From: Lepidodermella squamata
Lineage: Eukaryota; Animalia; Gastrotricha
Assembly (NCBI GenBank): GCA_047495785.1
Contig: JBLDXI010000003.1
Coordinates: 4,278,001-4,342,000 of the forward strand
DNA: 64,000 nt
Reading direction: 5' to 3'
Part shown: one piece after another, positions 40,601 to 44,549 of the stretch
Layout of the letters: the number at the start of each line of letters is the position of its first letter
Position numbering within the stretch: position 1 is the stretch's first letter
The notes under the pieces: model-generated
What the model saw: only the letters and a program-made list of their open reading frames with translations
Databases searched by the model: none
Told to the model about the DNA's origin: nothing
Program-made: the position numbers and the translations under genes

Positions 40601-43600
40601 TATTATAACACAACTTCTTGATTGGAATATTCCGATATATTTGGTGTATTTTATCTTATGGTATTTATGGAAAATTAGTAATAATATGTTATTTAAGCGC
40701 GCGCGTATAGGTACTAATGCGTGAACGCGCCACTGATAGTACATTCAGCTGCCGCGGTATTCTTGCTGCCTGCTTGAAACTATTTTTGCCGCTGCTGCTG
40801 TGTGCTTAGTTCATGCTTTTTGATACTCAAGCACTCACGCCGTGAACCTTGTGATATAAAAATTATTAGTATTAACTCGATAGTAGTTGGCTTTTATTAT
40901 GACTTGGTTTGAATAGAATACCATCTCTCCCATCACATCACCGCCACTCCCACCGTCATTTCATGTGTTTCAAATGGCCTCATCCGCGTTGCGCTTTCTC
41001 TTGATATTCCGATATGCAATTTTCAGACTGCGATTCAACTAGAAATAGAGCAGATAAATTGTACCGACGTTACTTTGGCGTTATTTTTACTTCATGGCTC
41101 ATCTTATGTTTTTCGCCGATGGTTGCCTAGCTCGTAGGATTCACCCTCTTTGATAGTTTTGTTCTCCCTGAAAGGCCCCCCGTACTGGCACAATTTCTAT
41201 TCAGTCGCGCGCAACTTGTCGTGAATACACATTCTCGTTTAAAATCAGCTAGACCTTTCGTTTTTTCGAGAGCTCTTCACAAATTTGTTGGGCTCAGTAC
41301 TTTATGGCGCCTGGTTTTTTTTCGTGAAACGATGAGCACTCTTCTCGAGCGCTTCAAGTCATTTTGCCAATACCCTTAAGCTATTTATATATATATATAT
41401 ATATATTTATGGAACAAGTGTTACTTACTGTTATTATTGTTGAATGTCCACTTTGCAATCGAAGTGACACGAACCGTGAAAGTTACTCGCTGTAACAATG
41501 GGTGACCAGCCTGATTCGAAAAGCTCCCCATCGGTTGCCGAGCCGGATATTCCCGAACGTAAGAGCGTAGTTTTTCCATTGGTTTTGCTAAAGTTATGAA
41601 GAGTTTGTGGAGACGATGACCGATCTGAGGCCAAGGCTCTTGATAAAACTATCAAAACTAACATTTGAAATCATCAGAGATCTTCTGCTCCTATGTCTCA
41701 TAAGGGATTGAAGTTTTTATTGTTCTCACGGCGGGCTGTAATTTATTATGTATTATTTTATGTGACAGCTCGTTGGAGCTGAGAAATCAGACTGGCGTAT
41801 CTGCTGGTCTGGCTTCTCGCCTTTTTCGCAGACAGATAACGCGACCGCTGCTGCCTGATGCGTTTTCCTGTATTAAGAGTTTGCGCGCGTGCCGCGATTG
41901 CGCTATCGCCGCGCTACAGAATTATCGTCACTGTGCTCATCACCGCTATTTTCCTGCCGCGGCTGCCTTTCTCTCTCATGTGATTGTGTATGAAGCTCAT
42001 TCGATCAGAGACAAGAAGACGATTCCTCCCGGGTCGCTTCTCACAAAAACACGCACGATCGCAGGCTCTCTCATTAGAAACCACGCGTAGCTGTTCCATT
42101 ATTATTATTTTTTATTATTATTACCACCATTGCGTCGTCTCATTCCTTATTGTACTGCAATTATTTCATACACTTTTGGTAGCTCCATTGTGCCGCAATA
42201 TTAGATGTGCCCATTCTTCGGATTCCTATTTTGCATCGCGCCGACTTCGCGTGTAGCTTTGCCAGTCAATAGATGTTTCTCCAGTGCGATGCCAGTCGCG
42301 AATAAGTGAAGTCGAATTTTTTCGTTACGGTGCGATTAAGTTGCGACCGCGACCTTGAAGCATCATGGCAGCCGCTACTATGATGATGGAAAAGGGGCGA
42401 TCAGGTATATCGATGCGTATATTGCGAAGAGTTGTTGTTATCTCTATTAATGCCGATGCGGCATATTTGCAATTTATTGGTATTTTAATCGCTCATAATT
42501 TCGCTTTTTCAGTTCGGATTTTCCTGGAACAAGCGAAGAAAGACTTCGAAGACAAATGGAACAGCCCACCCAAGGTATTAATTTATTGTACAATTTTTAC
42601 ATATAATGGCTTAAATTGTCGTTCGCGCAGAATACCGCTACGTTGGACGACTTCGATCGCGTGAAAACTCTTGGCACGGGATCTTTTGGCCGTGTCATGC
42701 TCGTGCAGCACAAACAAAACAAAAACTACTATGCCATGAAAATCCTCGACAAGCAAAAGGTTCGCAGTTTTTCTGACTGATTTCATTGACTTGTATTATT
42801 TATGGGATTGATTTTAGGTCGTTAAACTTAAGCAAGTCGAACACACACTAAACGAGAAGCGCATTCTGTGTTCGATCAAATTCCCGTTCTTGGTCAACCT
42901 TGAGTACAGCTTTAAGGACAATAGCAATCTCTACATGGTTCTCGAATACGTTTCTGGTGGTGAAATGTTCTCTCACCTCCGCCGCATCGGTCGATTCAGG
43001 TGAGCGCGTTCGATAATTAAATTTGTACATGTTTACCATAGCGAGTGAAAGTCGGAACATGATAATATTCTCTAGTATGTTTGACTAATCTCGGTTTGAA
43101 GCCATGATTTTGTTGATGTGGTGATCATAGACGCGAGTCGTTGATTCTATTTGATTAATAATGTTTTTCTAAATAATGCAGTGAGAGCCACAGTCGCTTC
43201 TACGCTGCACAGATCGTTCTAGCTTTTGAATACGTAAGTTTTGACCTTTCTAAGCATTGATCACGTGATGTCTTATGTCTCTCAACAGCTTCATTACTTG
43301 GAAATTGTTTATCGGGATCTTAAACCTGAAAACATTCTGATCGACGCCTCGGGTTACTTGAAGGTAGGGTTCATTTTCACCGTACCATCAGCTCAATTGA
43401 TGCGTTTGACGCGGACTTGAGAGACTTCACCGAATGAAGATTTAGTGGCCCCTCTAACTACCGATTGTATCGGTTCGTAGTTGCCTGGCGTTTCGCTTCT
43501 GTGGATTGGACTTGCTTACATTTGTTGATTGATCATAACTGTGTTACTAGTGAACAGCAAGCACAGTTTTACGCTGCGCAGATCGATCTAGCACTTGAAT

Positions 43601-44549
43601 ATCTGCACGAGAACGACGTTCTTTATCGAGACATGTCTGTTTAGAATCGTTCTGGGTGTACTTTAATCATTGATTGATTGAACATATCCCACAGGAAGCC
43701 CGAAAATATCTTACTTGATGCCGCTGGCTACGTGAAAGTAATAGTCGCTTGTCACCCGCCTGGGGTGCCCTTATTTTGCGTGATTGCTGCGACCCTATTT
43801 TTAATCGTTTTCACGCAATTTTCGTTATCTGATGTTGGTGCCTGCGCTATTTTGCTGTAGCGTAATTTTATAGCACACAACCGCTCAATTTCATATCGAT
43901 TTCGCGTTCAAACGCATTGGTTGCTGATAGTATTTTTAGCATTTGATAGGAAATAACTGATTCCAACTATTCAACAGGTGACTGACTTCGGTTTCGCCAA
44001 GCGCGTGAAAGGCAGGACTTGGACGCTGTGCGGAACACCCGAATACCTCGCTCCCGAAATCATCCTGAGCAAAGGCTACAACAAGGCCGTCGACTGGTGG
44101 GCACTTGGCGTGCTCATCTACGAAATGTGCGCTGGCTATCCTCCTTTTTTCGCTGACCAGCCCATTCAGATCTACGAGAAAATTGTCAGTGGCAAGGTTA
44201 GCTTATTTATTATTTAGGAATATTTAGGAATTAGCAACTGTTTTAAATTTCGAATTAGGTGCGCTATCCTTCGCATTTCACTGGTGACCTCAAAGAGCTT
44301 CTCAAGAATTTGCTGCAAGTCGACTTGACAAAGCGCTTTGGTAACCTGAAGAATGGCGTCAATGACATTCGAAACAGCAAGTGGTTCGCAAATATGGAAT
44401 GGATTGCGCTTTACCAGCGCAAGCTTGAAGCTCCTTTCATCCCGAAAACTAAGGGACCCGGCGATACGTCCAACTTTGACGAGTACGAAGAGGAGGCGCT
44501 ACGCATTTCATCGACCGAGAAGTGTGCGAAGGAGTTTGCCGACTTCTAA
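37618..44549 (+). CDS. PRKACA: cAMP-dependent protein kinase catalytic subunit (PKA-C / kin-1 orthologue)
   Basis: Exon 37618-37666 [16 protein letters not shown]; core exons 42513-42574, 42631-42759 (GTGSFG), 42818-42999, 43182-43233 plus 43289-43363 (YRDLKPEN), 43978-44196 ([14 protein letters not shown]), 44259-44549 (...[10 protein letters not shown]). Confidence 0.96.
39652..39826 (+). CDS. Putative alternative first coding exon of PKA-C (Ser-rich, non-myristoylated)
   Basis: 58 codons plus 1 nt ending at GTATGT; phase 1 matches the common exon at 42513. Confidence 0.6.
41386..41407. repeat. (TA)n microsatellite
   Basis: About 11 TA units in the first PKA-C intron. Confidence 0.9.
42365..42404 (+). 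CDS. Putative alternative first coding exon of PKA-C ([13 protein letters not shown])
   Basis: ATG in good context (ATCATGG), 13 codons plus 1 nt, CAG|GTATAT donor, phase 1. Confidence 0.6.
43551..43737 (+). CDS. Alternative PKA-C catalytic-loop cassette B (exons 43551-43634 and 43695-43737)
   Basis: Splices to [43 protein letters not shown]; 127 nt with the same entry and exit phases as cassette A. Confidence 0.85.

Follow-up and report, generated by a model that had tools for sequence, protein, structure and literature searches.

How a cell chooses between two versions of the same catalytic core, when both are encoded in tandem within a single gene, is the question raised by a plus-strand gene of the gastrotrich Lepidodermella squamata. 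The gene lies in a 64,000-nucleotide (nt) stretch of assembly GCA_047495785.1 (contig JBLDXI010000003.1, positions 4,278,001 to 4,342,000; hereafter the window, to which all coordinates refer unless another sequence is named) and is a gene for the catalytic subunit of protein kinase A (PKA-C). PKA is a central signalling kinase, and alternative PKA catalytic cores were reportedly first seen in Aplysia neurons; we know of no explanation as yet of the mechanism by which a cell chooses its PKA cassette. In the gastrotrich gene, exon 6 is present as two tandem cassettes, A and B, and the second of these is bracketed by two intronic segments able to form a strong, compact, and precisely placed RNA helix. 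We put the probability at roughly one half that this helix is functional, looping out cassette B and thereby favouring cassette A and blocking the inclusion of both, which is a known kind of splicing control. The helix thus offers a directly testable mechanism for PKA cassette choice.

Tandem duplication of exon 6

Exon 6, which encodes helix E and the catalytic loop, occurs in two tandem copies of 127 nt, each divided over two exons and both lying between the same pair of constitutive exons (in splice-site motifs, a slash marks the exon border):

42818-42999, plus strand: upstream constitutive exon, fused exons 4 and 5 in vertebrate numbering (sequence reading and translation)
43182-43233, plus strand: first exon of cassette A, A1 (AG/GT borders and translation)
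43289-43363, plus strand: second exon of cassette A, A2 (sequence reading and translation; A1 and A2 together 127 nt)
43551-43634, plus strand: first exon of cassette B, B1, with the weak donor CAT/GTCTGT (sequence reading and translation)
43695-43737, plus strand: second exon of cassette B, B2 (sequence reading and translation; B1 and B2 together 127 nt)
43978-44196, plus strand: downstream constitutive exon, fused exons 7 and 8, bearing the common acceptor (sequence reading and translation)

The short introns inside the cassettes (55 nt in A, 60 nt in B) split them at different codons and were therefore gained or kept independently after the duplication. In translation, both cassettes keep the catalytic loop YRDxKPEN, and a 35-nt stretch of cassette B is 86% identical to cassette A (repeat D1). 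Overall, cassette B is far more divergent than cassette A, and both of its donors are weaker, with 6/9 matches to CAG/GTAAGT compared to 7/9 for the donors of A. In place of the conserved QIVL of helix E it carries QIDL, with QAQ for HxR and RDM for RDL, and it would, if expressed, constitute an unusually divergent PKA core. The cassette types and the C-terminus EFADF agree with a spiralian affinity of the host.

Mutual exclusivity of the two cassettes is enforced by the reading frame. If both are included, B1 opens with an in-frame TGA after A2, and if both are skipped, the frame reads AG+G followed by TGA, so that an mRNA containing both cassettes or neither of them runs into a premature stop. 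Since 127 is not a multiple of three and these in-frame stops follow immediately, only A-only or B-only mRNAs are productive. A first-pass annotation of the window, made from the DNA letters and a list of open reading frames, had proposed a switch acting on a two-exon unit, and both cassettes are indeed two-exon, 127-nt, frame-incompatible alternatives.

A long-range helix bracketing cassette B

The two segments that bracket cassette B are the following, of which the first lies between the cassettes and the second upstream of the common acceptor:

43382-43420, plus strand: arm 1, the putative inter-cassette selector; partner of arm 2 in the minimum free energy (MFE) and centroid folds, and present in a single copy in the window
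43896-43933, plus strand: arm 2, the putative downstream docking element; within 6.5 kb, the two arms are each other's best partners

The first-pass annotation had paired 43383-43415 with 43901-43932, and these arms pair about as it described, with 31 base pairs (bp) including G-U pairs, one mismatch, and two bulges. The pairs comprise 43382-43385/43930-43933, 43387-43392/43923-43928, and 43395-43415/43901-43922, interrupted by the mismatch C43386 x A43929, a two-base bulge (T43393-C43394), and the bulged T43908. A further 4 bp (43417-43420/43896-43899) extend the helix to 35 pairs, made up of 16 A-U, 13 G-C, and 6 G-U pairs, with a duplex energy of -41.7 to -41.8 kcal/mol (RNAduplex). For the isolated intron from A2 to the common exon (613 nt folded), the MFE structure and the centroid structure both contain the helix, whose mean pair probability is 0.88 in the intron alone and 0.78 in a 1015-nt context.

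The position of the helix is as distinctive as its strength. The cassette A donor, whose first base is 43364, is followed after 18 nt by the start of arm 1, and 44-45 nt lie between the end of arm 2 and the common exon at 43978; the distances given at first pass, 19 nt from the first donor base and 45 nt before the acceptor, are consistent with this. The end of arm 2 lies 23 nt upstream of a branch-point-like CTGAT motif at 43957-43961, a candidate branch point proposed from its sequence. By the coordinates of its arms, the closed helix would enclose the two B exons in a loop and place the A donor beside the acceptor at 43978, as had been suggested, with donor, branch-point-like motif, and acceptor all remaining unpaired. 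Closure would turn an intron of about 614 nt into a virtual intron of 62 nt (18 + 44 nt), a length similar to that of the five constitutive introns of the gene (56, 58, 55, 60, and 63 nt; range 55-63 nt).

This placement also bears on a different use of the complementarity, namely that it mainly drives back-splicing of B1 and B2 into a small circular RNA, or provides a double-stranded RNA substrate for editing or processing. Circular RNAs usually form where an exon unit is flanked by inverted complementary sequences, and the arms do flank the B unit at distances of about 130 nt upstream and about 160 nt downstream. However, the circle would have a length of only 127-187 nt, the arms lie close to the outer splice sites (the A donor and the common acceptor) and not to those of cassette B, and no known RNA family in Rfam matches 42400-43973. 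We regard this explanation as highly improbable.

Statistical support for the helix

With a strict, helix-like scoring, the pairing reaches a score of 48 compared to 23.6 +/- 3.2 in 5000 dinucleotide shuffles, none of which attains this value (0/5000; p about 3e-5 from a Gumbel fit). A first, permissive alignment scoring was discarded because it was too lenient to discriminate. Across the window, the helix ranks first among 1268 placements of the same geometry, and none of 312 GC-matched controls of that geometry equals it (0/312). In a scan of 40000-46500, the arms are each other's best partner, at -41.7 kcal/mol versus -31.9 and -33.5 kcal/mol for the next best and a background partner energy of -16.8 +/- 4.8 kcal/mol, so that even the next best partners fall in the tail of the background. 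The next strongest long-range helices in the same-geometry scan of the window lie at about 22600-22900 and 61200-61900.

The excess of complementarity was also located by comparing splice sites with each other, using 67 nt past each donor and 94 nt before each acceptor in six combinations, with 1000 dinucleotide shuffles for each:

A2 donor x common acceptor (skips B): 0/1000 shuffles reach the observed value on any of three measures
Upstream donor x B1 acceptor (skips A): 7/1000 shuffles by energy, 2/1000 and 49/1000 by two alignment scores
The remaining four, namely upstream donor x A1 acceptor, B2 donor x common acceptor, A2 donor x B1 acceptor, and upstream donor x common acceptor (skipping both cassettes): p 0.4-0.85

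Excess complementarity is therefore confined to the two productive cassette-skipping splices. Finally, the seven transition-type differences between the arms give six G-U pairs and one C/A on the sense strand (p 0.06), and the sense duplex is more stable than its antisense counterpart (-41.7 vs. -34.7 kcal/mol).

A predicted hairpin over the cassette A donor and a candidate duplex looping out cassette A

Two further predicted structures, one of which shares bases with arm 1, involve the same pre-mRNA region:

43358-43391, plus strand: local 11-bp hairpin burying the cassette A 5' splice site AAG/GUAGGG
43000-43063, plus strand: 5' arm of a candidate mosaic duplex looping out cassette A, starting at the donor of the upstream exon
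43474-43548, plus strand: 3' arm of this candidate duplex, ending 2 nt before the B1 acceptor AG

The hairpin, in which 43379-43381 and 43383-43391 pair with 43358-43370, is predicted in three contexts that lack arm 2 and has an energy of -12.4 kcal/mol on its own (z -3.34; 0/200 shuffles as stable). Bases 43383-43391 are common to the hairpin and the outer part of arm 1. Because the long helix uses these same bases and is far stronger, its formation would expose the A donor. A second way of masking this donor, a pairing of 43360-43371 with 43791-43802 that crosses the long helix, had been put forward at first pass; it does exist (14 bp, -16.4 kcal/mol), but looks like a chance pairing and was treated as such, being a post hoc pick from a large search space.

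No helix of equal strength that loops out cassette A had been noticed before. What is found is indeed a weaker mosaic, but a candidate duplex, 43000-43063 x 43474-43548, does exist. Its energy of -40.2 kcal/mol is spread over 56 pairs in 14 stems of 2-8 bp, 11 of the pairs being G-U, and none of 433 GC-matched controls equals it (0/433). With the shuffle results of the site-pair comparison, its overall p value is about 0.002-0.05. In the MFE fold of the intron only 12/56 of its pairs form, and the mean pair probability of the duplex is 0.49. We consider this duplex a candidate only.

A proposed switch and the evidence for and against it

Starting from the observed gene anatomy, pairing potential, statistical excess, and frame logic, we infer that the helix may form in vivo and influence the A/B ratio, as well as the order in which this would happen. 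Most likely, the pairing of arm 1 with arm 2 aids the splice from cassette A to the common exon, loops out cassette B, and restores a normal intron size. As long as arm 2 has not yet been transcribed, the hairpin that buries the A donor would engage the outer part of arm 1 and may hold back the harmful splice from A to B1. Once the region downstream of cassette B has been transcribed, arm 2 would pair with arm 1, open the hairpin, and release the A donor. For cassette B, the opposite may be achieved by the weaker mosaic duplex, which joins the beginning of the upstream intron to the stretch preceding B1. A complete three-part RNA timer, in which the donor hairpin, the late arm 2, and the crossing upstream duplex together enforce the mutual exclusion of two-exon modules, is a tentative extension that we consider rather unlikely. 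If true, no structure-driven exon switch would have been described for PKA before it, and few outside arthropods and vertebrates. The loop-out helix by itself, if functional, would extend the control of mutually exclusive splicing by RNA structure to a short-intron, apparently spiralian animal; if it proves unconserved, it is merely an unusually good inverted repeat.

Several observations weigh against a functional helix. By a looser energy statistic (the best RNAduplex energy over 60-nt tiles) its p value is only about 0.003-0.01 (z -3.5; 1/300 shuffles as good). In addition, the helix was picked post hoc from a reading of 64 kb, for which we estimate a window-wide chance expectation of about 0.05-0.15 by extending the strict scoring to every pair up to 1 kb apart in the window. 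Taken alone, the helix is moderately significant at the level of the window, and its placement adds to that. The strand comparison is weak (p 0.06), with an antisense duplex that still reaches -34.7 kcal/mol. Folding, which had been proposed as a check, recovers the helix in the intron MFE and centroid structures and in the 1015-nt context but not in contexts of 1379 and 2037 nt, where it is missing from both the MFE structure and the ensemble (pair probability near 0) and where forcing it costs +9.2 kcal/mol. In these long folds, arm 1 pairs instead with the 3' end of the upstream exon at 42969-42994. This competitor has an energy of -33 kcal/mol and a 6-nt internal loop, and was rejected as a partner since it does not exceed chance. 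Global folds of more than 1 kb are unreliable, and the helix prediction is context-dependent. The proposed counterpart is open to question as well: the duplex looping out cassette A is pieced together from stems of 2-8 bp, is only marginally significant once six tests are allowed for, and would also cover the very donor and acceptor that are meant to be joined. Lastly, the searches described below found no relative close enough for an analysis of conservation or covariation (best protein identities 84-92%, none with tandem cassettes), and the PKA-C introns of Mya arenaria lack a comparably compact and specific helix.

Some of these points are what would be expected of a neutral inverted repeat, a relic of a small inverted duplication, a foldback, or a transposon end without influence on splicing, with exon choice being set by splice-site strength, proteins, and nonsense-mediated decay alone. 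The disappearance of the helix in long-context folds and the lack of conservation evidence among the relatives searched fit this explanation, as does the finding that the only strong bracketing complementarity in Mya arenaria is a repeat pair of ~340 nt. The outer ends of the arms, TA/CCATCAG ... CTGATAG/TA, slightly resemble terminal inverted repeats with a TA target duplication (the slashes here set off the TA), and the motif TACYATCAG occurs a third time at 40733-40741, adjoining a GCGT..ACGC motif, at chance level by BLAST statistics. Yet any element with the arms as its ends would need to contain two PKA exons that look functional, and the window contains no further copy of either arm at <=3 mismatches in 20, a short-word BLAST of the arms against it returning only 9-12-mers at chance E-values. 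As far as the 64 kb show, the arms are thus not derived from a repeat, the outcome that had been named as a possible refutation, and a dispersed-repeat origin was rejected within the window, the similarities at 40550-40566 and 40716-40745 also being at chance level. Further points against a neutral repeat are the precise distances of the arms from the donor (18 nt) and the acceptor (44 nt), which add up to the local intron size, the restriction of excess pairing to the cassette-skipping site pairs, and the excess of G-U over C/A on the sense strand. We see a neutral repeat as possible, if somewhat unlikely.

Comparison with known splicing switches

A Dscam-type switch needs one docking site and several selectors, one for each alternative exon, competing for the same bases; the docking site and selector sequences of Dscam1 exon 6 were reportedly described by Graveley in 2005. 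The PKA arrangement shares with Dscam exon 6 an intronic pairing beside a constitutive splice site that would pick one member of a tandem exon array, but it lacks a set of selectors competing for the same docking bases. The docking/selector mechanism of the Dscam type suggested by the first-pass annotation is therefore only partly reflected in the gene, which has a docking element beside the constitutive exon but a single outstanding partner for each arm.

Mutation and rescue experiments have demonstrated bidirectional pairing for srp exon 4 and Dscam exons 4 and 9 of Drosophila (Yue et al. 2016, RNA 22:96; PMC4691838). In our comparison, the PKA arrangement is closer to the bidirectional pairing of srp than to a Dscam docking site served by several selectors. 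In both, a selector between the alternative exons (arm 1) would pair with a downstream docking element (arm 2) in a cluster of two alternatives, looping out the distal one and bringing the proximal donor, here that of cassette A, near the common acceptor. A possible second pairing of the upstream intron with the inter-exon intron would loop out the proximal alternative, and the two pairings would cross in a pseudoknot-like manner. In contrast to srp, the PKA alternatives each consist of two exons around an intron of their own, the upstream pairing amounts to no more than a marginal mosaic, a local hairpin masking the donor overlaps the selector, and the host is not an arthropod. If competing structures arise by duplication, as one model has it, one arm should leave a direct-repeat trace (Ivanov and Pervouchine 2018, PMC6071210), whereas the only such trace in the PKA gene is 13 nt long with an 85% match (43386-43398 / 43878-43890).

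Hairpins within introns can also act by shortening the distance between the 5' splice site and the branch point, as in long introns of yeast and in the structured AC/GT introns of teleosts. The PKA helix would likewise bring the donor and the branch-acceptor region within a preferred distance, but the segment that it loops out holds alternative exons, so that the helix would also decide exon choice.

A parallel in the protein is found in molluscs. Mutually exclusive exon 6 cassettes of PKA-C, covering residues 142-183, were reportedly described for the Aplysia isoforms CAPL-A1 and CAPL-A2 by Beushausen et al. in 1988, and to our knowledge no mechanism based on RNA structure has been proposed for the molluscan cassettes. 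The same 127-nt exon (residues about 140-181) is duplicated in the gastrotrich, and the second molluscan cassettes share with cassette B the LEY that replaces FEY. Unlike in molluscs, cassette B is much more divergent and both cassettes in the window have gained internal introns, at different positions.

Exon 6 cassettes in other animals

Word searches with individual exons gave best identities of 88% for the upstream exon and 84% for the last exon, and an exact look-up of ten open reading frames (ORFs) of the window in the protein collection returned no match. A scan of metagenomes recovered 80 PKA loci with a best identity of 92%, mostly spliced transcripts and all with a single A-like cassette; the closest contig (L008) is nematode-like in a search with its full ORF. 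Tandem or alternative cassettes are found in bivalves. Three bivalve proteins (P0156, P0154, and P0164) contain two tandem cassettes through read-through of the gene model, and RefSeq bivalve isoforms carry either an FEY (P0184/P0204) or a VLVLEY cassette (P0187/P0210). A LALEY...ILLD cassette type, which is nearer to cassette B, occurs in Logan transcripts (P0226 and P0237).

These searches bear on the possibility that the duplicate B is in decay or seldom used, and that the helix merely offsets the abnormal intron length brought about by the duplication, so that A is joined efficiently to the common exon in what is in effect a constitutive splice, with no regulated switch. A B-like cassette was found in 0/80 of the metagenomic and metatranscriptomic PKA contigs, which fits this explanation, as do the weaker B donors (6/9 vs. 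7/9) and the unusual helix E substitutions such as D for the usual V/I of QIVL. On the other hand, cassette B keeps a two-exon open frame, GT-AG borders, its 60-nt intron, and the catalytic-loop residues YRDxKPEN, and LEY-type second cassettes are annotated as expressed isoforms in bivalves, with the LALEY...ILLD type present among Logan transcripts. We judge intron shortening without a switch to be unlikely.

In Mya arenaria (CP111024.1, L088), exon 6 is present in three tandem cassettes (51271-51397, 54004-54130, and 54706-54832), two of which are read into one protein by the deposited gene model. Copies of an inverted repeat of ~340 nt (48517-48855 / 51665-52023) bracket the first cassette. 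This result neither supports nor excludes a shared mechanism.

Duplications of other parts of PKA-C were encountered as well. The metagenome contig JAAUYB010088157.1 (L084; 1607-1777 and 4001-5950) contains an animal PKA-C gene in which exon 2 stands in two tandem copies and part of exon 5 (DNSNLYM...GGEMFSHLR...GRF) in three, which look like further mutually exclusive clusters in the PKA-C family. Two deposited arthropod proteins show internal repeats: in a PKA-C protein of Oppiella nova (P0203), exon 6 is repeated 42 residues apart, and in one of Ixodes scapularis (P0148) a larger internal block is repeated; these may be either read-through tandem alternative exons or assembly artefacts.

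Remaining features of the PKA-C gene

Apart from the cassettes and the constitutive exons that flank them, the gene has the following exons:

37618-37667, plus strand: candidate alternative first exon 1, with a myristoylation-type start and a phase-1 GTAAG donor fitting exon 2
41498-41559, plus strand: candidate alternative first exon 2, with a phase-1 GTAAG donor fitting exon 2
42513-42574, plus strand: exon 2
42631-42759, plus strand: exon 3
44260-44549, plus strand: last exon

Within the first intron of the same pre-mRNA, a third CTGATAGTA adjoins GCGTGAACGC in 40716-40745, and 40556-40566 (within 40550-40566) forms an 11-mer complement of arm 1, both at BLAST chance level. With its two candidate first exons, the gene would resemble PKA-C genes of other animals, for which alternative N-termini are known.

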